Of a stretch of DNA of 64,000 bases, positions 14,925 through 61,022 are shown piece after piece. The DNA lies in assembly GCA_964247055.1 (NCBI GenBank), contig OZ176052.1, forward strand, positions 2,728,001 to 2,792,000. Reading direction: 5' to 3'. The position numbers and the translations under genes were made by a program. This DNA comes from Paragordius varius. Taxonomy: Eukaryota > Animalia > Nematomorpha. Each line of letters opens with the position of its first letter. Position 1 is the stretch's first letter. The notes under the pieces are model-generated. The model ran no database searches. It saw only the letters and a program-made list of their open reading frames with translations, and had not been told where the DNA came from.

Positions 14925-17900
14925 ATGGGAGTTGAATTGAATTTTCAGAACCGTGGTTTAAAATTGGAAACCGCTGAAGATGGTTACATATAATTGTCAA
15001 TGAAATAGGTGAAGAATTGTTAAATCTTTTTGACGATAATGCGACATACGAAATAATCAAAATTGGTGGAAACACTATAAGCGTTGATTTTGCTGAAGTT
15101 TTTTCCGACAAATTATCACAACAAAAACATTTAAAAGTATCTAATTATATGTAATTATAAGCATCTACTTTTGAGTGATATATTTACTGGTAGGCTAAAA
15201 ACTGAAATACCAATTGCTTTGGTAAGTTATTTTTATCTAAAAATATTTTAGGATTATTTTTGTCATGGTGTTATGAAATCAGGATCTCATATTGTCGAAT
15301 TAGATTTAAGTGATAATGCATTTGGTCCTGCAGGAATCAAAGCACTTCGGCCATTTTTTGAACATGATGCTTCTAACTCACTTAAAATTCTCAAATTTAA
15401 TAATAATGGGATGGGTATTGAAGGTGGAAAGGTAAAGAATATATTTATTAAATAATTTACGTATTTTTTTAATAACATCCGTGATTTTAAAGCTAATAGT
15501 TGCATGTTTTTGTTTCCTTTAGTTATAAAATAAAAACGAGAAAATCATGGTAAATAATTTTTTTAATTTTGTTCATATATAAAGCAAAAATATCATTTTT
15601 TGAAATATAGGTTTTGAAAAAAAGGTAAAGTTTATATTATATTATTTCAAAATAGGTGCTATCAGAATATTTGAAAGCGTGCGTTAAACGATGCCAAACA
15701 AATCACCAATCAAACCAAAAATTTGCATTACAAGAATTTTATGCTGGACGCAATCGATTGGAAAATAGAGGGGCCAAAGCACTTGCAGAAGCGTTTAAGG
15801 TAAATTTTATAAAAATTAAAACTTCAAATTCTCTTTCTCTCTCGCTCTCTCTCTCTCTCTCTTAAGTTTTAATTTTCACTCAAGAAATTATGTGTTTCTA
15901 AAATAAATTATTTTGTTTATGTGAAAATTATCATTATCAAAAATAAAATAATATTTTTTGGGTGCCTTGTTTTACAAAATTATCTGCCTTATTCAATAAT
16001 TTAAAAGGAGAAATATTTTTTTCGCAAACTAGAGCAACACCCCCAAATGACATTAAGTGTGGAATCTGCATCTTGAGCCCTTTTTTTCAAAGATAATATT
16101 AAATTTTTTGATAAATTTTCATTAAAATTATTCATTTATAATATTTTACAGATATTTAAAAAATGTTTCAATAAAAAATGACAAAATTAAATTATTTTTA
16201 TTATTTTGACTCATTATAAATGTTACTCAATACCCACACCTCAACTTTAAACGACTCTAACTCAAATATTGTATTATCGGAAAAATGTTTGATTATTAGG
16301 AAAAACTAAATATTTTATAGGCGCATCATTATTTTAAATACCTTATCCTGAGAGGGGCATTTATATTTCTGCAGTTTTTTATTTAATAATTTGTACGAAG
16401 CATCATTGACTAATTCACTCACGTAAAATACATATTTATTTACAACATTTTACCTAATAAAATCATATTATAAATGTTTGCTCTTTTTACTAACGTTATT
16501 TATTTTATGGTATAATATAATTGAACAATTCTTATCAAAACTATTGTGTCTTAAACTGACCTTTTTACTTCATCCTATCACTTTAATCATATTGCCTTTC
16601 GAATTTTGTCTATTTCCATGATTTTCATAAAAAAAATTATGAAGCGCTCGCTGTCCGGAAAAAATTATTTAATCGTCGTTGCTATATTTCGCAAGGAGAT
16701 GCCAAAAAAAGAAATTACTGGAAAATAAAATCAACGCTACGAAATTCGCCTCTATTTATATTTTAATTATATTTATAGTTTGGTGTTTTAATAAACTTGA
16801 CTCTTCTAGTTAAATATGTATTAAACACTTTACATAAAATCCAAGTTGCAAAGATTTGTTTATTTTAATAGAAATGAGATATTTTAATATATTTAATTTT
16901 TAAATTCAGTAATTGACGAATAAAGATAATTTGTAAAAAAAACCATAAGTCAAACCTTAAACCAAAACAAATAATTAAAACTCTATGATCCATACAAAAA
17001 CCGTTTAACCATAGTACGCTAAAAATTATAATATATTCTACACAAAATTAACTTATGTTATAATTTTATAATAAAATATTCTTATATGTATATATTAGTT
17101 GATTCATACGCTTGAAGTCGTAAGTGTACCCCAAAATGGGATATACCATGAGGGTATAAGTGCACTCTCTGAAGCTTTTACCTGCAATCCAAATTTGATC
17201 CATATAAATCTCAATGATAACACAGCAACTGCTAGTGGAGCTTTTTCGCTTTCCAAGGTTTCTTTTTTTCTATTATAAAATTTAATTTTTAAGGATAAAA
17301 CTTAAAAAATAAAAAATTATTAATTTTCCAATATAAATAAATCCATATTTTTTATTTTTTGTACATAATGGATTACTTTTTTTGGGATATATAAAACTAA
17401 GTGGAGTATTTTTTGAGTTCCTCCTTATAACACAATCCAAAACGATAGGTTAGCCTAATATCAATATTTAAAAGTACGTTAAAAAATATTTGCTCCATAT
17501 AACTCTTAATGATAAAACAGCCATGGTTATTAGGACCTTTACGTTATTTAAGGTTTTTTGATATATATTGAAATTATAAAAAAGACACAAGTAAAAATGC
17601 AACGCCAGTATTACATTTAAGATTGTTAGAAAGTATAATCATCCAAAACTAATATTTTCCATTCACATTAATAATTTTATTTATATTGTATATGCTATCC
17701 AGCGATATTAAATTAAAAACTAAGAATGTATTTTTACTCACAATGTATAATGACAAAACAAACATTAGATGTTAGACAATTATTTTTTTATATTATAAAC
17801 TATATTTTTGAATCATATTTTCAATATATAACATATATAATTGCTTTTGTGATACAGATATAAAATTGAGTGCGTTGTCTATTTGAATTTCTTATCCCTA

Positions 17901-20802
17901 TATCACAATCCAAAACGAATAGGCGAGCTAAAACAAATTTAAAAGATACGATCTTTTTATTTAAAACATTCGTTTTTTACTTTTTACGTTTTGATTTTTT
18001 TGTAAAATTTTTGAAAAAATATTTTATTTTTCTTTTAGGCTCTAATAAACTTACCCAAACTGGAAATTTTGAATGTGGGGGATTGTTTGTTGAAAGATAA
18101 GGGGGCTTGTCATATATCACATGCTTTGCGTCATGCAAAATGTCTACAGGTTAAACATAGTTTTTTGAATGTTTTTTTTTCAAAATTGTTTCCCAAAAAA
18201 TTGCAAGTATTTTTAATTTTTTTGCTACTAAAGTTTTAATATATTTTAACAAATTTATATACCATTTACAACTCAAATTTACCCTTAAACATTTGAATTC
18301 ACCCTAAAAATAAATTATGTGTTTTCGGGCTAATATAATCATTAATATAAAATATATTTTTACGACATTCTATATTATTTTGTTAAAGGGTATTCATTAA
18401 TTATAAAATAACACATAATTTATTTTAGGGGAAATTTGTTGTGGGTGAATTTGAATCGTAAATGGTATATAATAATTTTTTTAACCAAATAAATTGATTC
18501 TTTTAGGAGCTCTATTTGAACAATAATGAAATAAATTCTCAAACTGCTTTACACATTATTGAAGATTTGCAGAATGTTAGTTCACTAACGTATCTTGATT
18601 TGAATGGTATATATATTTCATCATCATCATTTGTATCGCCATTAAATGTCGGTACACCTGTTTTTTCCAATCTTTTCTTGTTTTAGCAAATTCGAGATTT
18701 TAATATATGTAACATAATTATTTTTTTATATTTTTCAATAAGTTTTATAACATAATTCAAAAAGTTTTATAAAAATATTCACTTATATATATATAAATAC
18801 AGGTAATTATTTTGGAAGTGGTGTTTCTATCATTAAAGATCAATTGATAGAAAATGGTAAAGGACATATCATATCATCACTCAGGTATAATTCTATAACA
18901 AATATTTTATTTTATTTAATTCTATCAATAACATTAAGTGTAACCAGTCCATTTTTTATAATACATTGTTACCCTTAATACGTATTGTTTTTAATTTAAA
19001 TTGCATTATTGTTTTTTAGATTACCATTAAATAGATGATGTTATGTGGTATAAATAATCATATATTTATTTAATCAAATTAAGTGGGTATTTCTTAAATG
19101 AAATTGAACTCAGAGACCGATTTAAAGCCAATTTTTGTAAGTCAGAAGAGTGACAAAAAATATTTTTTGTAAGCCCAAACCAGAGACGAAAATCTAAATG
19201 GCACTCGAAAGAGTGTAAAAAATGACATTAAACCGGAACCTAAACTCAAACAAATGACATACTTCTCGCCTATAGAACCCCTTTTTTATAATAAAAAATT
19301 GTGAAACCTGTGCTATTAAAATAAAAGTGTGAAATTCAAAACCGATATAAAAAACGTTTTCTTTGCATGTGAAATATTTAGTGATGATGAGGGAAGTGCC
19401 GATGGCGATTCTGAACATTCTTCTTATGAACACATTTCCAATGTTTCCTCTGGAGATTCGGGATCTGAATCTGACATTGATGAAAATGGTAGATTTTATA
19501 ATTAAATTTTAATTATTCCTAAACTATGATGTTTTTTTTCACAATAGTTAGATGTTTGATATGTATTATCTCTTTTTAAAAAAAATAAGTGATATAGTAC
19601 CAATTAGTTTTTTTATACAAGAAAATTTTCGGTATAGCTTGATTTTATTTGGATTTTATTGTATGGAAAAAAACCAATTAGAACAGGGGCGGGCAGAACG
19701 CGGGCTGCATGAGGCCCTCCAATTTTTTATGGCTTTAAAAAATTTGAAAAAACCAAATAAATACAAAATTTTATCATTTAAGAGAAAAATCAATAAAATT
19801 ATGAATTGTATATCATTACTTTAAAGTATTAAATTTCATGGAGGAAAGTAATAAAAATAAGTTGATTTATATTTATTATTATTGAAGATAATCTAAACTG
19901 CTTAATTTTTTAAAATATAGAGGCAAATTTGAATATATCTTTCCAAATTTCGTCAACGGATTAAAATATTTAGTTGATATATCGTAATCGTAAATTTTTT
20001 TAGAATCATCTGATTGAAATATAATAAAATTTTTATTGATTTCAAATTTTGGCAACAGAATAACGTAGTTTTTTACTTTTTTACAAATTATTTATTAATG
20101 TCTTTTGCTTGTCTTTTTTTTCAATGCAGACCGCCCTAATTTTTTAGCTAAAAATGCGGCCTCTCGAAGGCATTTGTGTTTGGCATTCGTTTATTAGATG
20201 TTTAAAATATTTTATATTTATTATATAACTTGTATGGTAATTTAGAGTCATATACTTTAATAAATATGCTTTAATAGCATACATTTCTGCATATTATTTC
20301 TATAATTTTATAAATATTTTTTAGCAACACCTTTTTTGCATAACATAATAAATAGAATTAGAAAATGGAGAATATGAGGAAGAGGGCGAAAGCAATAGCA
20401 CAGAAGACAATGAAAGCCCCATCACTGATGATCTCATAAAACTTGATAGGATTAACTTGGAAAGCTCTTCCTATGAACAAATTGGTGATAACATGATTAA
20501 AGCAGCCGATGATAAAATTGACGTGGCTACAAAAGGTAACGCCTATTTTTTTATTTAATATTTGGGGTTTACATAGTTGGTTTTCCATAAGAGTTATAAA
20601 TGAAAAAGCGAAATAAAATTTGATTGATTTTTAGTATGAAAGTTTTTAAGTTTCTCGCTAATGTTAGTCGTTTTAGTGTAAATAGGATAATCTTTTTTAA
20701 TGTTTTTTATTATGAAATGCTCCTTAGTACAAACATTGATAAGTTATACCGCCATGATTTACAATTTTTCTAATCTAAAATATTCTCACTTTATCTATAT
20801 AA

Positions 20803-20841
<39 letters not shown>

Positions 20842-24769: not shown

Positions 24770-27700
24770 CTATTTTCAAAGTTTCCTCCTTATCCGTATC
24801 CTCCGTTTCTAAATTTCCACATTTGCTTATCATGTTCATCCGTTTCTGTTCCACCATTCTTCATATCTTACGTTTGTAAAGTTTGACTCTTTTTTATACC
24901 ATCCGTTTATATAGATCCAACCTTCTTTGGACAGTCTTCACATCCAATTTATCGGTTTCTATTTATATTATACCAATCTTCCTAACTAATTCATCCGTTT
25001 CTATTAAAAAGTTCCATCCTTCTTCATTTGCCTGTCGTCCGCTATAAAGGTTTTATTGTTCTTCATTTCCCCTTCATCCGTTTCTATTAAAGTTCCAGCC
25101 TTCTTCATTTCCCATTCATCCGTTTCTTTCGTGGTCCAGCCTTCCTTATTTCCCCTTCATCCGTTTCTATTAAAGTTTCACCCTCCTTTATTGCTAATTC
25201 ATCCGTTTCTATAAAAATTTGACCCTTCTTCTATGCCGTTCATCCGTTTTGATTAAAGTTGCACCTTTCTTGTAACTGATTCATCCGTTTCTATTGAAAA
25301 GCTCCACCCTGCTTCATCCGTTTCTCCTGAACTTTCACCCTTCTTCATATCCACTTCATCCGTTTCTTCTAATGTTTCACCCTTCTTCATATCCACTTCA
25401 TCCATTTCTTCTAAAGTTTCACCCTTATTCATATCCCCTTCATCCGTTTCTTCTAAACTTTCACCCTTCTTCATATCCACTTCATCCGTGTCTTTTAATG
25501 TTTCACCCTTCTTCATATCCCCTTCATCCGTTTCTTCCATAGTTTCACCCTTATTCATATCCACTTCATCCGTTTCTATTAAAAAGTTCCATCCTTCTTC
25601 ATTTGCCTGTCGTCCGTTTCTTTCAAGGTCCAGCCTTCCTTATTTTCCCTTCATCCGTTTCTATTAAAGTTTCACTCTCCTTTATTGCTAATTCATCCGT
25701 TTCTATAAAAATTTGACCCTTCTTCTATGCCGTTCATCCGTTTCTTCCAAAGTTTCACCCTTCTTCATATCCATTTCCTCCGTTTCTTATAAAGTTTAAC
25801 CCCTCTTCATATCCACTTCATCCGTTTCTCCTAAAGTTTCACCCTCATCAACACATCATCCGTTTCTTCTAAAGTTTCACCCTTCTTCATATCCACTTCA
25901 TCCGTTTCTTCTAAAGTTTAACCCTTCTTCATATCCACTTCATCCGTTTCTTCCAAAGTTTCACCCTTCTTCATATCCCCTTTATCCGTTTCTTCCAAAG
26001 TTTCACCCTTATTCATATCCTCTTCATCCGTTTCTTCCATAGTTTCACCCTTACTCATATCCCCTTCATCCGTTTCTTCCATAGTTTCACCCTTATTCAT
26101 ATCCCCTTCATCCGTTTCTTCCAAAGTTTCACCCTTCTTCATATCCCCTTCAACCGTTTCTTCCATAGTTTAACCCTCTTCATATCCCCTTCATCCGTTT
26201 CTTCCAAAGTTTCACCCTTATTCATATCCACTTCATCCGTGTCTTCTAATGTTTCACCCTTCTTCATATCCCCTTCATCCGTTTCTTCCATAGTACCCTT
26301 ATTCATATCCCCTTCATCCGTTTCTTCCATAGTTTAACCCTTCTTCATATCCCCTTTCGTTCCTTCCATAGTTTAACCCTTCTTCATATCCCCTTCATCC
26401 GTTTCTTCCAAAGTTTCACCCTTATTCATATCCACTTCATCCGTGTCTTCTAATGTTTCACCCTTCTTCATATCCCCTTCATCCGTTTCTTCCATAGTTT
26501 CACCCTTATTCATATCCCCTTCATCCGTTTCTTCCATAGTTTAACCCTTTTTCATATCCCCTTCATCCGTTCCTTCCATAGTTTAACCCTTCTTCATATC
26601 CCCTTCATCCGTTTCTTTCATAGTTTCACCCTTATTCATATCCCCTTCATCCGTTTCTTCTAAACTTTCACCCTTATTCATATCCACTTCATCCGTGTCT
26701 TCCAAAGTTTCACCCTTCTTCATGTCCTCTTCATCCGTTTCTTCCATAGTTTCACCCTTATTCATATCCACTTCATCCGTTTCTTCTAAACTTTCACCCT
26801 TCTTCATATCCACTTCATCCGTGTCTTCCAATGTTTCACCCTTCTTCATATCCCCTTCATCCGTTTCTTCCATAGTTTCACCCTTATTCATATCCCCTTC
26901 ATCCGTTTCTTCTAAACTTTCACCCTTCTTCATATCCACTTCATCCGTGTCTTCTAATGTTTCACCCTTCTTCATATCCCCTTCATCCGTTTCTTCCATA
27001 GTTTCACCCTTATTCATATCCCCTTCATCCGTTTCTTCTAAACTTTCACCCTTCTTCATATCCACTTCATCCGTGTCTTCTAATGTTTCACCCTTCTTCA
27101 TATCCACTTCATCCATTTCTTCTAAAGTTTCACCCTTATTCATATCCCCTTCATCCGTTTCTTCTAAACTTTCACCCTTCTTCATATCCACTTCATCCGT
27201 GTCTTTTAATGTTTCACCCTTCTTCATATCCCCTTCATCCGTTTCTTCCATAGTTTCACCCTTATTCATATCCACTTCATCCGTTTCTATTAAAAAGTTC
27301 CATCCTTCTTCATTTGCCTGTCGTCCGTTTCTTTCAAGGTCCAGCCTTCCTTATTTTCCCTTCATCCGTTTCTATTAAAGTTTCACTCTCCTTTATTGCT
27401 AATTCATCCGTTTCTATAAAAATTTGACCCTTCTTCTATGCCGTTCATCCGTTTCTTCCAAAGTTTCACCCTTCTTCATATCCATTTCCTCCGTTTCTTA
27501 TAAAGTTTAACCCCTCTTCATATCCACTTCATCCGTTTCTCCTAAAGTTTCACCCTCATCAACACATCATCCGTTTCTTCTAAAGTTTCACCCTTCTTCA
27601 TATCCACTTCATCCGTTTCTTCTAAAGTTTAACCCTTCTTCATATCCACTTCATCCGTTTCTTCCAAAGTTTCACCCTTCTTCATATCCCCTTTATCCGT

Positions 27701-30440: not shown

Positions 30441-31842
30441 CTTAAAATAACATGTTTCATTCAACAAATAACATTTTACATACAAATTTTAGGCCTACAT
30501 ACATTACAAAAATAATAGAAAAATAAATTTAGGTGTTACAAGTTTTATAGATTCAACCTAGTATATTTAAAAATTATTTACATTTATTTTGACAAACAAT
30601 ATTGTTTTTAGAAATTTCTTTCCAATTTTGTTATATTATTTATAAAGATTAATTTCTGTTTGGGCTATCCCATTTCATTAAATCCATTTATAATATCTTA
30701 AATATTCGGTATCGCGAAATTTATACAATATTTGATTAAAATCATGTTACAAATTTTAAACTAAAAATTAAAAAAAAATTCAATCATTTTTGGTCATGAT
30801 AATATAAGCAATGAAAATTAATCAAAAACTGCATGATTTTATTAAATAGAGTTCTATTATTATTGTAAACCATTAACATATTTTGCAACAGGTATTATAT
30901 AAATAAATATAACAGATCCATTTAAAAATATGATATATCGATTGGCAATTATAGAAAACACAATTATTTTAAAATCAATTTAGAATATATTTTAGTGAGT
31001 ATGAGAAAAAAATGAGCCCATATTAAGGCATATTATTTTAGCGGATATGAAACTTGACTATAGAAACTCTCTTATATAAACTAGATATAATTACCTTGTA
31101 TTAGTTATTTGCATTGTCCTATACATCATCTGAATATAACCATAACCGCTAATAGACGGGTTTTCCATTACAATCTTTTGTTGATTTACATTTAGAATTT
31201 GATAAATGAGTACACTAAAAACAGTTTTTAAAATAACGATGATTAGAACATTGTAAAAAATGATTGTTGATTAACCAATATAATATGTTAGGTTTTAATG
31301 AAAAGTAGTGTCAAAGTTATTTTGCGCTCCTATCATTTGTTGAATAAAATTTGTATTTTAATTAAATTATTTGTGCTAAACAAAAGATGAATATAAAAAA
31401 CGTTATTACATCGTTAAAGCCCAAAATAATGTTAAAGGATGATTAAATTTGACATTATTTATGCGAATCGGTTAAAAAACAGGCTAAAGCAAAATTAAAA
31501 AGCAATGTATCCCGCAATGCGTACCCGTTTATTTTTCATTTTTATATATATCTTCTTGATGTGTAACTTTGAACCATTTCTAAAACAACTATTCTAGTTT
31601 TAATTGATAGATACAATAGATATAATTATTAATTAAAGTACCATAAGACAATATCACATTATTTAACAACTATTTTTTATTAAATTATTATTTAAAGAGC
31701 TATTTTTATTTTTCAAATAATTTTAAATGCACTTCTCTGTACTTATCATTAACATCTAATAGGCTAAACATACGTATTTCAGCTGTATCGGCGTTTATTA
31801 AATATTTATTAAATAATTTTTCACAAAATTTTTAATTTAATT

Positions 31843-34135: not shown

Positions 34136-34231
34136 AATACGTATTCGCCGACATAGTGAAGTGGTCATAAAGTGTTAAACTATACTTTAAGCTTAAACAA
34201 AAGGCACCATAAAAATTATGCATTTTTAATC

Positions 34232-44480: not shown

Positions 44481-47400
44481 TCAATTCTCCACAAACTGAT
44501 AGTTATCATAAATTCGATCAAACATAGATTTACACGATATTTTAACGCCCAATTTCGAGCACAGCAAAAATGCCCCAGCCATTTTGCGATGTAGGCTAAG
44601 GCTTTCTTCAGGCGGTGGCGTAAGCCTTTCATTGACAAGCGTAGGCATCAAAGTTTGTACTTTCCGTGTAGTTTCTTGGTTGGAAAAATCAAAGGGTTCA
44701 TCAGTTGCAAACGCTTCTCCCATCATAAGGACTGCAGTAGCATGAGAATCTTTCATATTCTAACGAAAAAAAGAGAATTAATTGACAATGTGGTATTTAC
44801 AGCGTTTCTAGAAGTTTTAGGAATCAATATATTATTTTTTTAAATATTTTAGTTTATATTAACTACAGTGCATGTAATTATCATAGATATAGTTTTTTGA
44901 TGTTCAAAATTTGAAAACCAGGGATACGGAGCGCTAAGGAGATCCAATGGTATAAAATTAAGAATACAAACACAATTTCCAACATTCATATTATAATTAT
45001 TGATAAAGATCTATAATACTTTGGTTTCAGTCTAAAATAAATCATGTCCAATCTAAACCATGGTTTTTATGTTGAATTGTATAGACTTCATAAGTTAGCC
45101 CCTATTTGAAATATTTTTATCGATACCGATGTTGTATTTTTTGTGTAAATGAATTTTACCGGAACGGTAAAAATATCAAAGACCCCCAATTTAATAACGC
45201 ATCGACTGCACAGTTTAATTAAGTCACTGTTAACATACCTAACCCTTATAATATCGCTATAACAATATGATTATTATAATAATTATATCATGATCATAAA
45301 GGTTAGGACCCCGAATTCGGAGTTTTCGTACCACGAAGTAATTCATATTCATAATATTTTTATTTCGTGGTAATCTGAGGCAATTTTTTTACGTGACACA
45401 TGCTGTTGTGTACAACTAATGTTTTTACAGATCATTAGAAACTGGCCTTTGCCGTTAGCGCATTTTCATGTCCCAGCCAACACCGTGAGAAAGTGATAAT
45501 AGGACTTTGTTGGCCGATTATTATAATGAACACATAAAATATTACCTGTGTTTCATAACCCGTTAAGAAACCAAGTTCTTGTGAAAGTTGAAGTATTTGG
45601 CCCTTATCTCTCATCGCAGCGGCCTTTATGAGTCGGATGTAGGTGTTAACGAATGATTTGGGAAATTCTCTACAAGCCCCAAAATCTAACAGGGAAATAG
45701 TGTGGGATGTTTCATCGTACAAAAAATTTGACCAGTTGGGATCGGTTTGCATAAAGTGGAAAACGAATAATTCACGTAAACACAAATCCAAAATTTTGCT
45801 ATAAGTAAAACACAAAAAAAACATACATGTATATATGAATTTATGGAGCAAGTATTATGGTTAATTAATATAAAACTCTTCTTAAATCTGTAGAATCTAT
45901 GTTTTAGTTACCGTGTCAGGATATATATCGACATTTAATAGAAATCAATTTTCCTGTAAAATCAAATTTCAAATAGGTAAACGTTAGGACAATCGGATAT
46001 TATGATTCAAAATGTAGGAGTTTAAATTAAAACCTTTAAAATTCATTTTTATCATGTTTTAAGATAAGTAAAAGAATTTAAAGTTTTCATTAACAACAAC
46101 ACTCACATCCCCAAGTAACCAGTATGATTTCTTTTACAAAGGATATCACTTATTTGTTTTCTTAAATTTTTTTTTTAAAACTCTTTAAAGTTAAGGTTCT
46201 TTAAAATAATCATAATACATAAAAACATCATTATTGGAACCGTTTTTATAATCTAATCAATTAAATTCTGTATTTCTTTACGCACTGTGCTATTTCCATA
46301 CCAAATCTTTTATAGCAGTTTATGTATAACACAAATTTACTTGCAAATTTTAATTTTCTTTGTAATTATGTTTGCATTTAAAGAGTAAAACTTTTATAAT
46401 AAGGTTTATATATTAGTTTAAATAAAATAGTATAATCTTATTGGTGCTCTATGATAAAATTGGAACAATATCGAAAAAAACCCCATCCTTACTTTAGATA
46501 AAACAAAAATAATCATTTATACCCTCCTATAAAGTTGCGCGTTTCCTGATTCAAATGTAAAGTTTGATCTAGCGGAATACCAGGCATATATTCACTCGTT
46601 AGGATTCTTTGCGTTGTAAGAGAATGTACAATGTGTGGAATACGAAAAAACGCATCTCCCACAAGCAATTGTGTTCTAAAGCGTTCTGAGGACGCAGCTT
46701 CCCGTATGTAATCAACTTCTAAATGGAGTTCTTTACGGAAAACGCCTAGGGTTTTTGGGCGGGTAAAATTTTAAAAAATCAATTAAATTTATGGAAAAAT
46801 CAAAGATTGGGATCATTTTTGATTACGGTTCGGGTTAAAATTTATATGCAAAGCTAAAATTGTAATAGAAATTGGAGTATTAATGGCATAATTTTTTTAA
46901 AATTTATTAAATATCCTGGCAATAAAGCAGTTTAGATTCCAAGTCTGTTTAAGAAGAATAACCAAAAAAATTTAACCGTTTAGAATACCATTTTCAGTGA
47001 TAAAACACGTCGAAATGATTTTTGATCCCAAATGGTTTCGAAAATAAAATTATAATTTTTCCTGAAAAAAACATATAACACAGATATTAAAAAAGATTCT
47101 CTCAATCTTTATAAATTTTATTAACCAATCAAATTTGGATTCATAAATATAAAAAAAGATCTGTTTTAAGAATAATCTAATACTTATAAGTTAAGAAAAA
47201 ATCGAATCCATCCACTTCATAAAATTTACATTAAAAAATAATATCTTCATATTTTACCCGTATAATTAGATATTAAAATGAGTGAAAAACTTAGCGCACG
47301 AAAAAATTTACAATAAACTCACTCACCTAAAGAATAATCGAGAAATAGACCAGGAGGTAATATTTTAGTGTATTCAAGTAGGCCAAGTAAATTATCTATA

Positions 47401-48819
47401 TCACTATCAATACTTTCAGCAATTCCAGGATACTGTATTTTTACTGCTACCCTTTCAAAATTAAAGGGGGAAGTAGGATTTTGTGTTTTAATGTTGAGTT
47501 TATCAGTATCAGACGAAAAATTTTGTCCATCCTTCAACATTTCATTATGGGACTTGGAATACGATTTGCTTTCATTATTTAATAAATGATGGTTAGGGCT
47601 TAGAAAGGCTTCATGAACTTGACCAATAGATGCGGCAGCAAATGGTTTCATATTAAACTGTGAGAAACTATAATATATATAGATATCTTTCAATTTTTCG
47701 ATATAATATATATTAACCAAAATGAGACATCGCAAACTAATTTCTTAAATTAAAAAAACTTATCAATAACTTAAAATCATTTCAGTCCCAAAAAAGGTAG
47801 CTGTTAAATTAAAAAAATATTAAGAAACACCATAAAAATTTGTCATAAAAGCACACAATATTGAAATATACATTATAATTTTAGATTAAAATCAATATAC
47901 TTATCTCTCCAATGCCGTCCTAACTCATGGTGCAAGACACTTTCAGTTTGGCCCGCTGGCATAAAATCCGCCCCCTGTCTAACCCGTTCAAATATGGCTT
48001 GTAATTTTGGGCTAATAAATGTGTTATCTTGTATGCTTAAAAGCTGCCCAAATTTTAGGGCGGCCCCTCGGACTTTACACAAAGTTTCAACTATCCGTTC
48101 AGCATTTTGTTCATTGAGAAATAAGCTTTCGGGCGTTATTGGCGCAGATAGCCCGTTTGCTAAGGGCCAATTAATTTTATATAAAGTAAATATATATATA
48201 TATATCCATATAAACATTAATTTATCATATGCTTCTTTCTTAAATATTATTTTTGTAATTCTAATTATAATTTTAGTGTCGCGGTCTGTTTTTACGCTTT
48301 TTATAATTTGAAAAAACACAAACGGTTTTATTTCCCATCGTTGGCATCGAGATATTAGTTTGAAAATAATTTTAAAATATGGAATATAAAAAATATTAGA
48401 AAACAATATCTTACTCATTGTTTTCTTAGCTAATTCGCTTACGGCTCCAACACCAAGCCCTGCTGCTAGGGAGCCATAATTAAAAAGACGACTTATTTTA
48501 GACGAGGGTATTTTATTTTCTTTGGCTTTTTTGGACAGCGATTGTTCGAGTTTTGATTTTATAGAATTGACTTTTTTATGGTTAGAAAAATTATTAGATT
48601 GGATAGACGTAATTGTAGTATCAGTATATGCATACCGACTTTGTGCTAAATGAAGATACCGTTTTTGATTGCCATTTATTTTAGATGTTTTTCGCAAGAT
48701 TGAAGAGACACCAGGTACAAGAAATTTCGATTTCTTTAATAATAATGACTAAAATAAAAAAAACATTATACTTGAATATATCCTAAAACATAATAAATTT
48801 TAATATTATTGGAATTCAT
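44481..48819 (-). CDS. COQ8: Atypical kinase COQ8 (ADCK3/ADCK4, UbiB family) (7 exons)
   Basis: Exons 48819-48772, 48748-48415, 48159-47901, 47667-47327, 46745-46523, 45798-45546, 44759-44481; phases consistent. Motifs [22 protein letters not shown] (KxGQ), [61 protein letters not shown]. Confidence 0.94.
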
Positions 48820-48935
48820 AATTTTAACAAAGGACTGACGGAAAAGTTATTGCTAATTAATTAATCCTTTTCTTGTAAAATTGGGAAATAAAAATAAGGC
48901 CATGAGTTTTCAAATTCAGTTTGCTTCATGAATTT
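48820..48935. promoter_or_regulatory. Putative bidirectional promoter, COQ8/CNIH4 (116 bp between ATGs)
   Basis: Inferred from divergent ATGs at 48819 (-) and 48936 (+). Confidence 0.6.
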
Positions 48936-51900
48936 ATGCCTTTCGATACATATGTTACAATAACATGTGCGATTTTGGCGATATTAGCCCTATTTTTGAT
49001 GATTTTTTTCGTATATTTTATTAATTTTTAGATCATTACTCTTACCGATTTGGAGTGTGATTATTTAAACTCGTTTGAATGCTGTAAACGGCTAAATAAA
49101 GTAATATTATTGTATATAGTAGTGTGTAATACCTGAAATAATAATCTCATTTGCACCTTTGGTGCTTATAACATTCACAAAATTTTGGTATTTATGCGGC
49201 GCTGTGATATTTCCCTTGTATCTCATTTTCAAGTTCAAAATCTATTACAATATTTAGGTATTACACAACGCCTCGTGGTAATTTCGGTGTATATGATCCA
49301 ACAGACATTTATAACCGTGGACAATTGCGTAAAACTTTGAGAATCACAATGGTTAAATTGGGATATAATCTAACCTTCTTTTTTATATATCTATACTGGT
49401 ATGGTAATTATTCATACTATTGATGAAATAATTATTTATGGATTTAATTTTACTTTAAACGGATTTATTAATAAGCAACGCTAAATGATGTTTAATTATT
49501 ACACTGCGCCAAAATCGGGGGTATTATGAATAAGCTAATATATATTCCGATGAAAAAATGAATCATGATTATTATGGTCCTTTTTGGCCTTGTGATTTAA
49601 GAAAGTTTTTATTTTATGGTAGGTGCTGAATATAAATTTGCGCATATTTTTTATATAAATTTTTTTGGTGAAGCTAGAGGCAACTATTACTAAATATATC
49701 ATAAATTACTTATAAAAGCAAAACAAAATTTTTAAAAATTCAATTAAGTCCCAAATTTTTTTGGTCTTCTATAATATACTAGTTCTATTAAATAAAGGCA
49801 AAAATGCCATGGATTACGTGATAAAAACATAGCTTAATTCACTTTTTAAAATGAATACCTTTTACAATAATATAATTTTTAGAAAAATTTAGTTTAAGCG
49901 TACTTCATACTATTTTGAGCCATGATAGAGACGGTATGAGAATGCTTTAACATATTTTCAAAACACTTTCTGTATAATTCGATGATGCTGATTTCTATCG
50001 CTTCAGAATTTTATTTTAAAGTTTGTTTGCTTTCAAATTTGGCAAATTTTTTGAGGTAATAGAAATTTTCAAAATCAATTTATAAAATGTTTTAAAATAT
50101 TTAACGATTTTTCATACCATTTCCATCATGCCTCAAACTAGTATGAAGTACGCTTCAACATAATTTTACCATATATTTATATATTTTATCGCGCAATCTC
50201 GACATTTTATCGTTTAGTTAAGCAAACCAGACCATAAGCGAATAAATGGGACTTTCGGAGCCCACATATAAAATTAAAAAATTTTAAAAATATTTTTCTT
50301 TTTTAGGCATTTTATGATATATTATAGTGATATTTTTTAAATGAAGTACATGCTTTCATCAAAAAAAATTTTTAAAAAATTGTGCGGAAATTTTGTCATT
50401 TTCTGATATGGAGCGCTTACCACAAAGTTTAAGTAAACTTTTTGTATAACTTATAGGGCCAAAGCCAAAAACACCATAATAATCAATACATTTTCCTATC
50501 AGAATATATATATATATAATTTCAACAGGTTATTTTTTGTGGATACAGTGTTATAACATATTGGCATAACTAATATGTTGTTACCAAAAACTAATTTGAT
50601 TTAATTCGTTTTTAGTGTTCATTAGAGACGATAAATCACCCAAATTTAAAGGTGTATATATATATATATATAGATATTTATGGCACTTTAGTAAAATATA
50701 ATAGTAATCGTTTGAACAACCCTAAAACAACTTTTTTATCACTTACCATTTTTTAATTTTTGACTTAGAAATTATAAATTTGGAGACCAGTTAATATACC
50801 TAATAATTCTTAAAATCAACCCTATTTCATCCATAATTCTACCATTGTGATAGCTTTTTATTAAATCGCTTATAAATGAATAATTGTTCCGGTTCATAAA
50901 AATATATTTTTGTTATATCACGTTTTTGACTGAATGTTTTTGAAATCACTGTATTAACTGATCAGCCCAACCTTTATTATGGCATTTTTTTGTCAAAAGT
51001 TTTGGCTTATTGGAACATTATTGTACCCAGATATGTCGTATTGGAGGTTTGTTGTGAGATAAACTAGAAATAATAATGGATATTAAAATATTTTAATATA
51101 AAAGTAACGTTAAAAAGTTCTGTCTTTATATCCATTATGTTTTATAATTTTAGCAAAATAATTTTGCTGTTATGGGACCCGTAATTATTTCTTTTTTACA
51201 ATAAATCTTCCTTTTATTTTAAAATTTATCTATTACACAAAATCGCTTAATGTATATCAGGCTTATGGTAATTTTATAGAAAAATGTGTTTATAATGTGC
51301 CTGAAAATTTTAGTTAAGTGGATATAACCTCCATAAATAAGTGATAAACTACGTTAAACACTATAATATAAGCAATCTAATACATTCAATAATTCGATAT
51401 TACTTTTTAATACGCGGTTTTGTCCAAATCCTTTTGCTTCTTCTTTATAAACAGTCTATTTTTTAAAAATAACAGGCCGCGTTTTTAACTTAAAAATTTG
51501 GCTGCCGCGTACAAAATATATAGAACAACATATGCATAATTAGTTATTAGTTCTTGTGAACGCAACATATTAAATTAATAGAAAACCGATGATTACCTTA
51601 ACCATGTCCGTTAAAAATATTTTTTACATAAAAACAGCAGGAATACGTTTGCTTAACAATAAAAAACTTCAAAATCTGTACAAGGACAATAATGCAAAAA
51701 TTTTATTTTAGGAAGGTATTAAAAAATGGTTTTTACACGCTTAACGAAAAATTGATGGTTTTCATAAAGCATAACTTACCTTTAAGCAATAAATATTTAA
51801 AAATTAATAAATCCATAAAATACAATTTTTGACTATCATTATAAAATTAGATACATGGATTGTCGTAAAATTGTAATTCGTACTTTATTTTGGAAATCCT

Positions 51901-54239: not shown

Positions 54240-57200
54240 TCATTTTTTTGACTTCTCCTCTCCTGACAATTTATTATTATTATTGTTGTTTTTCTTATTG
54301 GTGTTTCCATGTACTTTTGCGATTTCTGGCATTTTTTCTCGTCCTAAATTTATAAATTGGTATATTAGCATATATCCTTATTTAATACTATAAATATAGT
54401 AAAGGAATCCGCAAATTAAACAAAGTTTTTGTATAAATAACCAAAGTATCGGGATGTATTGTTATTGTTCAAATCCTACTAAAAAATATTTTAATGGTAT
54501 TTATATAACAGAATTTTTAAATAATTTATTCAGAATCTCTTAATGAAAACATATATGGGAATAGATAAAAAAGTACATATTTATTAATATTTAGAAAATT
54601 CTTTTAAGTTATATTCTTTTAGCTATTTAAAAAATTTGTTTCGTTTTTGGGCAAAAAAACTATTTTTTTAGAATTTATTGAGTTATTAAAAATATATATA
54701 AACTAAAAAATAAGATATCAAAAACTAACAATTAGAATTTATTATTTGTAGTCTCTATGATTAGGGTTATACAGAGTTTTAACCCATATTTAACAACTAT
54801 AATTACACATAGACGGATATAATAAGGTTCCAAAAATATGAGGTTTTTTTAGTTTTAAATCAGTTCTTATTTGTTTAACTCTTCACTTATATGTTTTATC
54901 TATGAAAATTTACTATGAACCCCAAAATGTAATTCCTATACTAACAGCTAAAAAAAGTAGAACCTTTCAAAGATATTTTTTGAAGATTTTTATCGAGAGT
55001 ATCTTCGATATTCAATTCATCAAGCGGGGATAATAGTTCAGCAGCATTGTCATTGTTGTTTGAAGTTGCAAAACTTGATGTTGTGTCCGGTTCATTGTTT
55101 AAAATTTCGGGTGTTGATATAATAGATGAAGTTATTTCCCAATCATCTTGAAATCGAATTGATTTATAAAATTATATATACCATTTACAGTTCAAATTTA
55201 CCCTTGAACAATTCAAATTTACCCTAAAAATAAATTATGTATTTTCGAACTAATATAACTCATTATTAATATGAAATATATGTTTATGCTATAATTTATT
55301 ATTTTTTCAGTATTATTTTAATTTAAAACAAAATTTATATTTTTTAAGAATATATAAAAATATTGGTAATTTTTAATCCATCCATCCATTCATTTTAGGT
55401 CCCAGGGTATCTGGGGTTTCCATGCACCAACTTCCTGAACAATGTCCTATCAAAGACTTGTTCGTGTTCAATATTGAAGTGTGATAGATCTTGGGTCAGC
55501 TGTTTGGACCATGTGAGCTTAGGGCGGCCTTTTCTGTTTGGGCCGGGTATATTTAAATGTTGTATTTTTTGGACCCAGTTATCGGAATTCATACGTTGAA
55601 TATGTCCGTAATATCGCAATCGATTGCGCTGGATGAATAAAGCTATGGGTTCATCTTCTTCTATGGTATTATCAAAATTATTGTTGCAGATTTTGAGCAT
55701 GTGATTTTCAGCTCTAGTAAGTCTATTTAGGTCTGTTGCTGTAAGGGCCCAGGTTTCTGTAGCGTATGTCATAGCTGGTCTTATTCCCATTTTGTAAATC
55801 TTTATCTTGTGATTCGATTTGATATATTTATTAGTTAAAATATATTTTAATTGATTGAATTTGGCCCATCCTTGTCTGATTCTATGAGAAATGGCATCCC
55901 TCAAAGAACCATCAGATGCTATATAATCGCCCAGATATGGGAAAGATGTTACCACTTCTAGTTTATCTCCATTAAAGTTTATAGTACGTGGATTAGATAT
56001 TGGCTGTGGTATTGATGAAGCACATGGTGTGCAGATGAAATTATTATTATTAATTAACTTTCCTTTTATGTTGGAACATTTTTTATGGACCCAATTTCTA
56101 CATTTTGTACAACAAAGTGAGTTTAGTTTTACCTCAGTGGAGCACACTGGGCATGGGAACTTTATAGTTTTATGTTCATCTCCTGTGATTAGAATTTTAG
56201 TTTTGTTTGTATTGATTTTAAGACCGTATTTATGTAATTGTTTTGACCATATAAGATATTTATTTTCGAGTATTGAAATATCTTCTGCAGTGATTATGAG
56301 GTCGTCTGCATAAAGAATTTCATAAGGCAGACCTTCTCTCATATCTTTTGTTATGTAATCAATTATAGCTATAAAAAGAAGTGGGCTAAGGACAGATCCC
56401 TGATGTAGCCCAGTATTTATACTAAAATACTCTGAATTCCCAACAGGAGTAAGAACACAACTGATTGAGTTAGTGTAGATTAACATAATTAACTTAATGG
56501 TATATTCATCTACGTTGTTGTAGCGCAGTGATTCTATTATTAGTGCTCTAGGTACTGAGTCGTAAGCCTTTTCTAAATCGACAAAAAGGTGGAATAGTTT
56601 ACGACCTTTTGCTCGGTATTTATCTTGTAATTGTCTGAGTAGGAAAATTGGATCGATTGTGCTTTTGCCCGCTGAAAAGGCGAATTGCATTGGATTAATT
56701 GATATGAGCTGGACGATACGATTTTTGAGGCACATTTCAAAAATTTTTAACCCATGTTCAAGAAGTTTTAAGGGCCTGTATGAGGCAAGGTTAAGATATC
56801 TCCTTTATTTTTGAAAATGGGAAATATAATGCTTTTTTCCCAGTCTTTGGGTATTTTCATTTCAACTATTATTTTGTTAAATAAATTTGTTAGAAGCATG
56901 GTTATATTGGGTATTAATTTAATGATATCAAAACATAGTTCACTAGGGCCCGAAGCCTTGTTTGATTTCATTTGGTCTAAAGCAATCTCAATTTCTTGTA
57001 TTGTGAATGTATTTAATGGGCCACAACAGGGATCTAGGTCAGAATTTATTATGGGTGTTAAAGGGTTGTTTAGATTTTGCTCCATATATTTTTGCCATAT
57101 CGATTTAATTAATTCTGGTTGTATTTGTAAATTATTATTATTATCTTTTATACATTTAATCGTTGGTATATCTTTTTTGTTATTATTGTAAAGTTTCATA

Positions 57201-60167
57201 TGTTTAAAAATTTTATTATTTTGGATTTCCTTTTCCAATTTATCGGCAGTATCTTTAGCCTTTTCATTCATTAATTTATTAATTTCCTTTTGAACCTTTT
57301 TGTTGTATTTATAATAATCAGTTTTGTCGTTTTCTGTTTTCGATTTCTTCCATTTTTTATACAAACGCGCCTTTTCTTTAAGTAATGGCTTAATTGCATC
57401 GTCCCACCACCATTTCTTTTGGGCTTTGCTCTTTCTTCTACCACACCATTTTTCTACATTTTCAATCGTATTGCTTCTTAGACTTTGCCAGGAGTCTTCA
57501 ACGTCAAGATTATCAATGTTTAAGTTAAGCGACTTTTTGAAATTATTCATTATATCAGGTTTTTTAAACTTGTGTATATTAAGTTTAGGTTTGGTTCTAT
57601 GATTAAAAGGCCTTGAGTTAAATTTGAAAATTGATGTTAAAACTTTATGCTGTGTTTCAGAGTTATAAGTGGTTGTATTTACCAGATATTTTCGAATGTG
57701 TTGACTAGTTAGGATGTAGTCTATTGTTGTATTATTATTGCCAGAAGTGTATGTAATCAGTTTATTTTTGCTTTTGGTGAATAAAGTGTTTGCTAACTGT
57801 AGTCGCTGAGCTGCACAGAATTCTAAGACATTTTCTCCTTCTTTGTCCCGATTATCGAAGTTGTATCCTCCATGTATACCAGAAAAACCTTCGCTGCTTC
57901 CAACATGTGCATTTAAATCTCCTCCAATCATTATACAGTCTGTTTCGGGTATATTGGAACATATTTGATAGAGCTGATCCCAAAAATCCAGCTTGCATTT
58001 ATCGGGCAAGCCTTTTTGGGGTGCATATACGGAAATAATATTGAGGATCAATTTGTTGTATATCATTCTAGCTTGAATAATTCTATCACTATGACGGGTC
58101 ACGGTAATTAGGTTTTGTCGATGTGTTTCTTTCATCATTATAGCGACGCCAGATTGTCCTTTGTTCCCACCTTGGTATAGTAATGAATAACCATCAAAGT
58201 GTTTTATACCTGCATTTTTATATCGAGTTTCTTGTAAACAGCATATGTTTAAATCTAAGTTTCGCACCGTATCTATTACCAGCCTTGCTTATTAACCATT
58301 GTTCCAACATTCCAAGAGCCAATTTTAAATGGTTCCGATATAGATTTGAAGTTTTTATTTAGATTATTGTATCTTATTTTTATTTTTGGTTGTTCATTTG
58401 TACCTGGTTTATTTATTATTGTTTTAGAATTATTTTTATTTCTATTATTTATGTAATTTGTATTTATAGGTATACTAGCATTATCATAATATATATTATC
58501 ATTTATATTAAAATTAAAATTTCGTTTTGAAATAGAGGTTTTATTATCATCAATCATTTTTGTAAGTCGTTTCTTCATGGTTTTGTAATTTGAGGCAAGG
58601 TTTTACGGATTATATGCCCTTATAAACCAACCCCTTTAACTCAGAGGTGAGGGTACCTTATTCGCTGCACCAGGCTAGAGAATGTCTAAAAAGACTACGA
58701 TTTTCTCAAATCGACCTCCTCCGTTGGCCTTACACATCGTGTAAGTTTCCGGACATCACCACGTGGAGGTGGAGGTAGGATTTTCTTAAAAAAAATATAT
58801 TTTATTTGAGGGTGAATTTGAATTGTTCGAGGGTGAATTTGAATTGTTCGAGGGTGAATTTGAATTGTTCGAGGGTGAATTTGAATTGTTTAAGGGTGAA
58901 TTTGAATTGTTTAAGGGTGAAATTGAATTGTAAATGGTATATATAAAATTTACTGTAAAAAGTTAAACGGTAAATTTTTTAATGTAAACTTTCCTACAAA
59001 GTTAATATCAAAAAGTAGCAATTATAAACTAATTTAATATTTTAATTAAGAGTGTCCAATATGCGGCCCTCCGAAACTTTATGTGCGGCCCGCAAAAAAT
59101 TGGAAACTCATATATAAAACATGCTCAAATCATAGTCAAATTAATATTTCTTAAATTATTTTTTTAAATAAGTCCGTCTAATTAACAAGAACTAGAAAAT
59201 TATATCGTGTTTGCATTTAACAGTGTGTTGAAAATCTAATAAATCATTTAATTATCATTTATGCAAATGCGCCCCACTAAAATGGGTCCCGCAAAGCCCA
59301 TTATTTTGGATGGCGCCCTAATTTCAATAAAGTATCAATAAGAATTCTACAAACGTAACATTTAGGTAAGGTGTGGTAACATGAAACTCATAAATTTAAT
59401 ATTGTGATAACCAATTAGCACAGTAGTAATTATTATAACAACTTACCGTCCATCCCTCCGTCCCAAGCAATATCTTCTTTGAGAGAATTTGTGGCTCTTT
59501 GAAGCAAAGATTGTCGCAATCGTTCTTCTTCATCCACCAAATGCACTTTGTAATAATACTTTTTCCAAAAGGTGGGTGCATCACACACGGATGGGACCTA
59601 TTAAATAATGTCAAAAGTATCGTATAGCAAAGCTTTATAGAAATTTTGATTTCATTTAATTTTTTTATATAATTTTTGTATGTAAAAAGGGACAAAAAGG
59701 TGAAATCTTTAATCATTTTAAAACGTAAAAACCAGAAACAATTTTTTTTCTGGTATAAAGATAGACATATTTTTAAAATTATAACGTATCTTTTATTGCA
59801 AAATATGGAATAGATATTTAGTACTCTCCATAATAGATTTCACAATTATAAACATTTAGTTTATTAATAAAAAACAGTGGTATATAAAAGTGGTTTGATG
59901 TTTAAATATTTTTCTTATATTTTATTTTTTCCCTGTATAATTTCAATTCTACAGTGGGAGTAAAGATTTGAAAGGTAAAATACCAATTAGATGGAAAAAA
60001 TAAAAATAACTTATTTTGAAGAGGGCTATAGATTTCTTATTTTTTAATTGAGCCATATAGGGCAGCTATGTTTTGATTAATATAACGTAATTAACTACAT
60101 AAAAGGCAAAAAAAGTATTATAGATAAATTAGAAAATGAATATTAACCAAAATAAATTTGTTATTAG

Positions 60168-60229
<62 letters not shown>

Positions 60230-61022
60230 TTTTACTTGGCATCATTTTATAAAATAATTAGGTCACTAAAGTAATGAATATGCAAACTTCATACCAAAAT
60301 ATTATACCTATTTTTATGATTAAAAAATTTACAATATATAAACTTGCTCAACCCTTAACCCCTAACACCCATATTAATTATGTATAAATAAATAAATCAT
60401 GCCGTTCATACAAAAAAGTATAAAACAATGAAATTTAAAAAGATTTAGATTTCTCTTTTAAAGAAAAATACCAATTGTTTGAATTTTAGATTGAGTTCTT
60501 GATTAGTTTCAAGCTGCTTAGAATTTTTTTCATCATCATTGACATATTTGTTTACCCATTTTTCATAATTGGCATCGCTAGTAAAATCTTCATTTATGGT
60601 TGATTCCAAATTTGTTATGACATTGGATAATGCGACCTATTTAAAAGTGGATTTATTAAAATGTATTCGAAATAAATCATTGTATAAATAATCGATTTAC
60701 CTGTTTTTTGTCCCATTTTATGTTTGTGGAATCTTCATTATTTTGATGAGCTTTGACAATAGTATCAAAGCCTTCCTTAACAAATTGACTAGTTTGATAA
60801 AGATTATCGATAATCTTAAATAAAACAATATTTAATACGTGCTTTTTAGCGAAATCTGTGGTATTTTGAAGGGATGCCTCCGAAGCCACAATATAATCCT
60901 TTATTTCTGTCAAATCATTTTTAACAAGGTCTAAAGTAGGCTTTATCTGAAAAAGTAAATTTATAATCAGTAAAAACCTTTTCGGCAATATTTCGCCAAT
61001 AGTCACCGATTAGTCCTGACAT
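54240..61022 (-). CDS. BSDC1: BSD domain-containing protein 1 (6 exons)
   Basis: Exons 61022-60978, 60946-60701, 60636-60472, 59597-59447, 55146-54964, 54343-54240; phases consistent. LDLVKNDLTE N-terminal block and BSD core VPSVCDAPTFWKKYYYKVHLVDEEERLRQSLLQRA...IAWD. Last two exons are low-complexity and less certain. Confidence 0.82.
55379..58785 (-). mobile_element. Near full-length RTE-clade LINE, ~3.4 kb, single APE-RT ORF broken by two frameshifts
   Basis: APE: KIGSWNVGT, CCLQETR, IISVYAPQ, GGDLNAHVG, IDYIL; RT: KASGP, DW..S.I.PIFKNKGD, YRPLKLL, QFAF, FVDLEKAYD, GLHQGSVLSPLLF, LYADD, YLG, RLRYYGH, RKGRPK.TW. Frame changes near 58280 and 56787. 3' tail (ATGG)n directly after the stop at 55395. 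Confidence 0.95.
58808..58930 (+). repeat. Six tandem 21-bp subterminal repeats of MITE family A
   Basis: (gagggtgaatttgaattgttc) x3, then three variants (gagggtgaatttgaattgttt, aagggtgaatttgaattgttt, aagggtgaaattgaattg). Confidence 0.9.
59048..59320. mobile_element. Degenerate hAT MITE (family B-related)
   Basis: agagtgtccaatatgcggccc...gcggcccgc ... ttggatggcgccct. Confidence 0.5.
60168..60226. repeat. (TA)n microsatellite in BSDC1 intron 3
   Basis: Uninterrupted TA run of roughly 58 nt. Confidence 0.95.

Follow-up and report, generated by a model that had tools for sequence, protein, structure and literature searches.

Introns of 21-36 nucleotides concentrated near the start codons of hairworm genes that also carry long introns

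We analyzed a stretch of 64,000 nucleotides (nt) from the genome of the hairworm Paragordius varius (contig OZ176052.1, positions 2,728,001 to 2,792,000; hereafter, the window), in which the 5' ends of the genes for RanGAP1, NADK2, a CNIH4-like cornichon protein, COQ8 and a BSDC1-like protein contain nine putative introns of 21-35 nt (hereafter, micro-introns), along with genes sampled across the 110.6 Mb assembly of 44 contigs, in which the window corresponds to C3:2728001-2792000. The best named relative of the COQ8 protein from the window is annotated in Gordionus sp. m RMFG-2023 (Nematomorpha), with 76% identity over the conserved part and, judging by such sequence similarity, the source genome is that of a hairworm (Nematomorpha) related to Gordionus but belonging to another species. 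The original prediction held that micro-introns are confined to the first 300 nt of genes and that all introns further downstream are long. The nine intervals are listed below with positions in the window and in the coding sequence (CDS).

14983..15008, plus strand: RanGAP1 micro-intron 1, 26 nt, GT..AG, after codon 19 (CDS 58), joining the ATG exon in frame to exon 2
15137..15161, plus strand: RanGAP1 micro-intron 2, 25 nt, CDS 186, flanks matching residues 48-84 and 89-104 of human RanGAP1 (9b62_G), cost-0 junction
15222..15251, plus strand: RanGAP1 micro-intron 3, 30 nt, CDS 246, flanks matching 9b62_G 89-104 and 109-164, unique cost-0 solution
14626..14660, minus strand: NADK2 micro-intron, 35 nt, CDS 147, cost-0 junction at exactly the predicted coordinates
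49011..49031, plus strand: CNIH4-like micro-intron 1, 21 nt, CDS 75, GT..AG, 3' piece matching positions 22-44 of the Cornichon family (PF03311) from its first residue
49101..49122, plus strand: CNIH4-like micro-intron 2, 22 nt, CDS 144, 5' piece ending at Cornichon position 44, frame unbroken once removed
49233..49257, plus strand: CNIH4-like micro-intron 3, 25 nt, CDS 254, 3' piece matching Cornichon 86-122, frame running to the stop codon
48749..48771, minus strand: COQ8 candidate micro-intron, 23 nt, CDS 48, GT..AG, between a 16-codon ATG exon upstream and a large exon that lacks an ATG before the conserved part
60947..60977, minus strand: BSDC1-like candidate micro-intron, 31 nt, CDS 45, GT..AG, linking a 15-codon ATG exon and the following exon in frame

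All nine intervals are bounded by GT and AG and have the predicted lengths, and their excision yields uninterrupted reading frames that start from an ATG. Junctions were identified by a frame-aware search for GT..AG pairs between homology anchors, with each exon searched singly against reference proteins; seven of the nine are backed by collinear, gap-free homology, in RanGAP1, NADK2 and cornichon. In RanGAP1, residues 6-42 of exon 2 match 9b62_G 48-84 (exon 1 is too short for a search of its own), residues 5-20 of exon 3 match 89-104 and residues 5-60 of exon 4 match 109-164, with no residue lost at the junctions; for micro-intron 2, a shifted 25-nt alternative (15151-15175) ties at cost 0. 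The later exons continue on the same reference (166-210, 211-262 and 266-293), and the search with exon 8 gave no RanGAP match, so that the gene is anchored up to residue 293. NADK2 exons 1 and 2 match residues 26-55 and 58-86 of 7n29_A, respectively. The cornichon gene is complete at about 140 codons, with a 36-residue piece filling the gap in PF03311 between 22-44 and 86-122, and all three of its introns are micro-introns. The remaining two cases, in COQ8 and BSDC1, rest on the need for a start codon: their first exons (16 and 15 amino acids, respectively) are too short or too unconserved for a homology check, and for the BSDC1-like gene no family or structure match was obtained on either side of the candidate, so that the two are best described as plausible.

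The later introns of the window genes for which anchors are available are the following.

15432..15655, plus strand: RanGAP1 intron 4, 224 nt, CDS 426, the first non-micro intron of the gene, between anchors 9b62_G 109-164 and 166-210 (alternative, 15424-15665, 242 nt)
15800..17098, plus strand: RanGAP1 intron 5, 1299 nt, between anchors 9b62_G 166-210 and 211-262, cost-0 junction
17258..18038, plus strand: RanGAP1 intron 6, 781 nt, between anchors 9b62_G 211-262 and 266-293, cost-0 junction
12459..14535, minus strand: NADK2 intron 2, ~2.08 kilobases (kb; about 2077 nt), starting at CDS 237, boundaries approximate
44760..48414, minus strand: downstream part of COQ8 with five long introns, 48160-48414 (255 nt), 47668-47900 (233 nt), 46746-47326 (581 nt), 45799-46522 (724 nt) and 44760-45545 (786 nt)

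Thus, downstream introns are long wherever they could be anchored in the window, in RanGAP1, COQ8 and NADK2; as a general rule, however, the claim fails, given that introns of 57-97 nt occur far downstream in other genes of the sample. The second intron of NADK2 is itself a long intron within the first 300 coding nt: exon 2 ends at 14536, and NAD-kinase-like sequence resumes in the open frame 12156-12458. The structure of COQ8 was derived by spliced alignment with three homologues, one of them the Gordionus protein, and the pieces of the ABC1 domain (PF03109) are collinear. Exon 3 of this gene includes ~34 in-frame codons (47452-47553, minus strand) that are missing in all homologues; the aligner preferred to treat them as a 102-nt in-frame intron, which we rejected in favor of a probable lineage-specific insertion. 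The 255-nt intron 48160-48414 (minus strand) contains no stop codon in the frame of exon 2, and a stop-to-stop scan for open reading frames reads through it.

The distribution of intron lengths along genes was examined in a positional sample of 42 genes, namely the window genes, 26 Ras-family genes, eight CCT genes and four HSP70 genes. The loci were chosen by whole-assembly Pfam searches for families in which the domain starts near the N-terminus (CCT/HSP60, Ras and HSP70); actin and tubulin loci were not counted in the sample. Introns were delineated with a purpose-written protein-to-genome spliced aligner that allows GT/GC..AG introns of at least 18 nt in all three phases, with true Rab5, Rap1 and Rho proteins and cleaned models of paralogues from the same genome as references. 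An intron was considered well supported if its length was not a multiple of three or it contained an in-frame stop codon and both 10-residue flanks reached at least 12 or, for in-frame introns, if both flanks reached at least 30. Several other procedures were abandoned. Intron sizes derived from exon-by-exon Pfam matches fail in genes rich in micro-introns, where matches cross in-frame introns and short exons go unreported; exon translations from the same genome proved unsuitable as references, as they contained unspliced in-frame micro-introns (e.g. 'FLHIMMKV' in RhoA); and a second alignment pass over the CCT genes, with noisier references, broke long introns up into spurious fragments, which is why the filtered, well-supported set was used. 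In the Rho insert region, apparent introns of 36-39 nt were dismissed as artefacts or ambiguous insertions, as was one of 51 nt in the Ras-family gene R14.

The resulting 159 well-supported introns fall into three size classes: 49 micro-introns (21-36 nt, median 25, mode 23-25 nt), 22 short introns (53-97 nt) and 88 long introns (at least 124 nt), with none between 37 and 52 nt. Micro-introns are strongly concentrated at the 5' ends of genes, accounting for 22 of the 32 introns at CDS positions 0-150, 20 of the 48 at 150-300, 7 of the 26 at 300-450 and none of the 53 at 450 and beyond (0/111 there in the unfiltered set). By distance from the ATG in genomic DNA, the corresponding fractions are 39/59 within 300 nt, 8/34 at 300-600 nt and 2/66 beyond 600 nt. 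Fisher's test on the 159 introns gives p=1.5e-9 for a cut at 300 nt and p=1.7e-11 for a cut at 450 nt. Because introns of one gene are not independent, tests were also run at the level of genes: among the genes with both classes, micro-introns lie on average upstream of the other introns in 14 of 15 (p=0.001), and the rank correlation between intron order and size is positive in 16 of the 18 genes with at least four introns. Of the 61 introns that follow the first intron longer than 120 nt in their gene, only 2 are micro. The paucity of downstream micro-introns does not appear to reflect a detection bias, because, when real micro-introns were placed in silico into exons at or past CDS 500, 21 of the 24 were recovered.

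The 5' bias of micro-introns is therefore real and strong, but it is a gradient rather than a wall at 300 nt. Introns are not evenly distributed by length with respect to the ATG, and the reversal of the rule that first introns are the longest, as originally proposed, is borne out in the sample as a whole. The boundary of 300 nt itself does not hold: 7 of the 49 well-supported micro-introns start at CDS 306-432. The formulation in which everything downstream is long was likewise too strict, given that 21 long introns begin before CDS 300 and short introns are found downstream; the short class also leans to the 5' end but includes the 69-nt intron at CDS 1377 of BiP, and introns of 62-89 nt were detected at CDS 495-1377.

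The intron series of individual genes, in the 5' to 3' direction, illustrate this polarity (Ras-family genes are denoted by R and a number).

R17: 23, 24, 28, 67 and 1392 nt
R18: 30, 27, 31, 693, 306 and 295 nt
R24: 21, 21, 22, 22, 22 and 382 nt
R9: 25, 58 and 2876 nt
R15: 64, 33, 71, 97 and 799 nt
R31: 25, 24, 25 and 25 nt
RhoA (R5): 23 and 24 nt
CCT4, 5' introns: 25 and 26 nt (unique junction solution)
CCT6, 5' introns: 23 and 23 nt (unique junction solution)
CCT3, 5' introns: 27, 28 and 36 nt (unique junction solution)
CCT5, 5' intron: 61 nt (unique junction solution)
CCT7, 5' introns: 84 and 57 nt (unique junction solution)
CCT1, 5' introns: 24 nt (weakly flanked), then 71 and 73 nt
CCT8, 5' intron: 29 nt (spliced alignment)
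CCT2, 5' intron: 61 nt (spliced alignment)
BiP: 23 nt at CDS 107, 28 nt at 339 and 69 nt at 1377
HSC70: 79 and 165 nt
Mitochondrial HSP70: 67 nt, then at least 10 introns of 295-640 nt
HSP110-like gene: 30, 297 and 889 nt

Comparison of RhoA with an 88%-identical Rho protein requires the removal of exactly 23 nt and of an in-frame segment of 24 nt at CDS 306; if retained, the latter would insert eight residues into a strictly conserved stretch. The other Ras-family micro-introns located past CDS 300 are those of R8 (25 nt, ~430), R14 (23 nt, ~432), R24 (22 nt, ~381) and R31 (25 nt, ~306). The eight CCT subunit genes, with about 1600 coding bases each, all open with introns of 23-84 nt within the first ~210 coding bases, and their later introns are each at least 47 nt and mostly 200-1500 nt long. 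The 5' exons of CCT4, CCT6, CCT3, CCT5, CCT7, CCT8 and CCT2 are collinear on the full-length NCBIfam subunit models (e.g. pieces 1-27, 26-47, 44-65 and 65-97 for CCT3, and 2-44, 45-66 and 66-135 for CCT6). HSP60 has no intron within the first 450 coding bases. The open frames of CCT1 (C6:5283631-5285832) and CCT3 (C2:9807614-9809314), of 757 and 590 amino acids, span several exons, and spliced alignment places introns of 200-420 nt inside them; hence some long introns remain open in the frame of the adjacent exons. In CCT2 (C7:4732xxx) and CCT7 (C7:1467xxx), the conserved N-terminal exon lacks an ATG of its own and, in CCT2, an ATG directly followed by a 28-nt GT..AG segment is located just upstream of that exon. 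This arrangement hints at candidate micro-introns placed directly after the start codon.

The polarity recurs separately in each part of the sample. The numbers of micro-introns and other introns before CDS 300 are 25 and 26 in the Ras family, 8 and 10 in CCT, 2 and 1 in HSP70, and 7 and 1 in the window; at CDS 300 and beyond, they are 6 and 14, 0 and 37, 1 and 13, and 0 and 8, respectively. This independent recurrence in every family and in the window makes it very unlikely that we are dealing with a sampling effect, whereby the polarity would be limited to housekeeping genes that are compact and highly expressed, such as those for CCT, HSP70 and small GTPases, and would be present in the window by luck. 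Such an effect would be compatible with a sample of only four families and one window, with the occurrence of long introns only, from the start of the gene, in the Rab3-like gene R13, in R25 and R26, and in Rab5 (R4) and Rap1 (R6), and with the PP2C gene of the window, which is free of introns over the first ~870 coding bases.

What kind of introns are these? An exact, frame-correct, cost-0 GT..AG solution was found at every junction where homology demanded removal of a segment, and after removal, the open frame is collinear with homologues, with no residues gained or lost, in RanGAP1, NADK2, CNIH4, seven CCT subunits and RhoA. The GT/GC..AG ends of the 49 sampled micro-introns are imposed by the aligner and hence are not evidence in themselves. 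The three size classes hardly differ in their donor and acceptor profiles, with GT[A/T] at the 5' end, a T-rich 3' end and [T/C]AG; A occupies position +3 in 63%, 81% and 64%, and G occupies position +5 in 22%, 33% and 25% of micro-, short and long introns, respectively. In micro-introns, T accounts for 57-80% of the bases at positions -5 to -3, and 87% have T or C at -3, a weak signal in introns with an A+T content of 83%. Because the profiles are near-identical across the three size classes, there is no sign of a separate set of signals. The collinear, gap-free mapping of the exons indicates that the short segments are probably ordinary U2-type GT-AG spliceosomal introns near the physical minimum size. 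Internal eliminated sequences of the ciliate type, which are excised from DNA at TA boundaries, were considered and rejected, as the boundaries here are GT..AG rather than TA..TA.

One explanation of the polarity, which was put forward in the original prediction as two splicing regimes with a trimmed, cap-proximal spliceosome, is that splicing itself depends on position. Under this scenario, a window of ~450 coding bases or 600 nt next to the cap or promoter would have a dedicated, early co-transcriptional mode of splicing in which introns of 21-36 nt are removed efficiently, for example, via the cap-binding complex or early RNA polymerase II, whereas downstream, where another size threshold would apply (at least 57 nt), micro-introns would be selected against. 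The sharp absence of micro-introns beyond CDS 450 and their near absence beyond 600 nt fit this scenario, as do the discrete size classes, with the empty gap at 37-52 nt suggesting a functional threshold rather than gradual growth. Furthermore, at CDS 100-450, micro-introns are rarer after a long intron (2/13 vs 38/82, p=0.07; unfiltered, 2/22 vs 43/92, p=0.001). However, two well-flanked, frame-breaking micro-introns lie far from the start behind long introns, namely a 23-nt intron in R21 (C3:6597733-6597755), 1.46 kb from the start after at least 1.2 kb of intron sequence, and a 31-nt intron in R11 (C3:8849629-8849659), located 1.86 kb from the start and preceded by a 1403-nt intron. Therefore, cap proximity is not an absolute requirement, and the strict form of the scenario is countered. 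The equality of the splice-site profiles gives no support to a trimmed spliceosome either, and in dicyemids, myxobolids and ciliates, introns of this size are spliced regardless of their position (PMC13644364). Position-dependent splicing thus seems doubtful to us; if it does occur, the gap and the polarity would be read-outs of two distinct mechanisms of intron recognition in one transcript.

The sequence around gene starts points in another direction. Long introns are rich in repeats: matches elsewhere in the 0.3 Mb sampled cover 22% of their bases, and 23 of 81 contain a match of at least 50 nt. The share of bases matching elsewhere in the sampled sequence was profiled around 44 gene starts, with the following result.

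-1500 to -600 from the ATG: 37-41% of bases matching elsewhere
-600 to -300: 24%
-300 to 0: 6%
0 to +600: 11-14%, partly paralogous exons
beyond +600: 18-26%

Thus, the profile along genes, which the original prediction called for, reveals a repeat-poor trough from -300 to +600 around the start codons. Both pairs of micro-intron-bearing genes in the window are arranged head-to-head, with very short spacers between the start codons.

14808..14924, no strand: divergent spacer, 117 nt, between the start codons of NADK2 (minus) and RanGAP1 (plus)
48820..48935, no strand: divergent spacer, 116 nt, between the start codons of COQ8 (minus) and CNIH4 (plus)

Accordingly, two promoters and both 5' untranslated regions must fit into 116-117 nt; comparison of the two spacers revealed no common word longer than 8 nt.

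The repeat-rich long introns, the trough at the ATG and the head-to-head spacers, although correlative, lead us to lean slightly towards the explanation that a repeat-protected island at the gene start keeps the 5' introns micro, whereas later introns have been lengthened by insertions. Under this model, introns would either remain minimal or shrink to that size except where repeats or transposons lengthen them; an island of ~1 kb that spans the gene start, from approximately -300 to +600 nt relative to the ATG, would be kept free of insertions, probably by selection on the promoter and 5' functions, and only introns inside the island would remain micro. A single spliceosome would remove introns of all size classes using the same weak signals, micro-introns being recognized, conceivably, by pairing of their ends across the intron. 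The suggestion of a promoter-proximal zone that excludes transposable elements in a re-expanding genome accordingly fares better than that of two splicing regimes, but the support is a correlation, and the limit of 300 nt was wrong.

Several observations weigh against the insertion-free island. The zone filled with micro-introns has no room for repeats by construction, so that only the upstream half of the trough is independent evidence, and even there, promoters are repeat-poor in most genomes; the matches at 0-600 nt are in part paralogous coding sequence. The protected island is not universal, because the first intron is long in 11 of the 42 genes, besides the 21 long introns that begin before CDS 300. 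The sample itself, comprising four conserved housekeeping families and the window, covers positions beyond 600 nt with only about 14 genes, and CDS positions are approximate to ~30 nt where the start codon was deduced. Protein searches found no transcript-derived proteins of the same species, and splicing was accordingly deduced from DNA.

A further possibility is that micro-introns are young, having been gained recently with a 5' bias and born small near gene starts, and that long introns are old and laden with insertions. The first 300 coding bases are indeed very intron-dense, Ras-family genes reaching four or five introns there, and several intron positions in the Ras orthologue appear to differ from the exon boundaries of vertebrate RAS genes. 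Conversely, the introns of 39, 74 and 550 nt in the Rac-like gene R23 presumably sit at the codon 12, 36 and 75 boundaries of human RAC1, in which case small 5' introns would be ancient. We consider a recent gain of this kind unlikely.

Outside the two satellite-like arrays described below, the G+C content of the window is 25-30%. The genome preprint for Gordionus reports a G+C content of 26.9%, 64% repeats and a BUSCO completeness of 71.6%, and nowhere mentions introns. Other animal-type genes of the window include a rhodopsin-type receptor, PP2C, the ABC1-domain gene COQ8 and a long interspersed nuclear element (LINE)-type endonuclease and reverse transcriptase. The receptor (2644-4020, minus strand) is a 459-codon open frame with a match to the rhodopsin family of seven-transmembrane proteins and, unlike the adjoining genes, is apparently intronless.

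55398-58288, minus strand: non-LTR (long terminal repeat) retrotransposon carrying two long open frames, flanked by CNIH4 and the BSDC1-like gene and perhaps inside a BSDC1 intron

The 506-amino-acid frame of this element contains an endonuclease/exonuclease/phosphatase domain, and the 469-amino-acid frame contains a reverse transcriptase and a weak match to the PHD finger. Regions 24900-30450 and 1-1500 consist of tandem repeats over several kb, with several reading frames left open (minus strand, 'ETDEGDMKKGETLE...') and a very strong GC skew of -0.5 to -0.6, and the block 25256-26540 is duplicated at 26966-28251; these repeats could represent either a satellite or the gene for a repetitive acidic protein.

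The combination of micro-introns and kilobase introns within the same genes provides a natural experiment on the limits of intron size, in which selection against insertions near promoters can be set against the limits of the splicing machinery. There is also a practical consequence: standard gene finders and BUSCO-type scoring miss such short introns, so that hairworm gene models are probably wrong at their 5' ends, and the gene loss and low completeness reported for hairworm genomes, such as that of Gordionus, may in part be an artefact. The new element here is the within-gene 5'-to-3' polarity of intron size; the main hairworm genome paper (Cunha et al. 2023) may mention intron sizes.

The micro-introns themselves are a further case of the ultra-short introns known in animals. 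In a survey of 51 animal genomes (PMC13644364, 2026), introns below ~30 bp are known only from dicyemids and myxobolid myxozoans, two groups with compact genomes, with published medians of 22-27 bp; hairworms are not named and no positional gradient is described. The length peak near this range is present in the hairworm sample, but a genome-wide ultra-short regime with a median below ~30 nt is not, given that 49 of the 159 introns are micro and 88 are at least 124 nt long. The dicyemids (Dicyema japonicum) and myxobolids resemble the hairworm in being parasites with GT-AG introns of ~20-30 nt and reduced splice-site motifs, and in the clustering of short introns beside other short introns. 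However, almost all introns in these animals are tiny, whereas in the hairworm, micro-introns make up approximately one-third of the sampled introns, are confined to the 5' ends and share genes with kilobase, repeat-filled introns. Ciliate introns fall in the same size range (about 25 nt in Paramecium and 15 nt in Stentor), with the ends paired across the intron, but ciliates have no long class and many use a different genetic code; in contrast to the hairworm gradient, Paramecium introns are uniform along genes (25.3 nt for first and 26.4 nt for later introns; PMC2518113). Human ultra-short introns (<66 nt; PMC4463651, PMC8363638), some of which depend on SPF45/RBM17, are likewise a minority class in a genome with long introns; they are rare, measure 43-65 nt and, in the available parts of these papers, are not reported as concentrated at gene starts. 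Longer first introns are general in eukaryotic genes (PMC2518113), and the hairworm genes reverse this textbook rule, with the first one to five introns minimal and the later ones 10-100 times longer. A parallel for such position-dependent length is the exception described in the same work, the operon genes of Caenorhabditis elegans, in which first introns are shorter than expected, in a member of the nematodes, the sister phylum of the hairworms.

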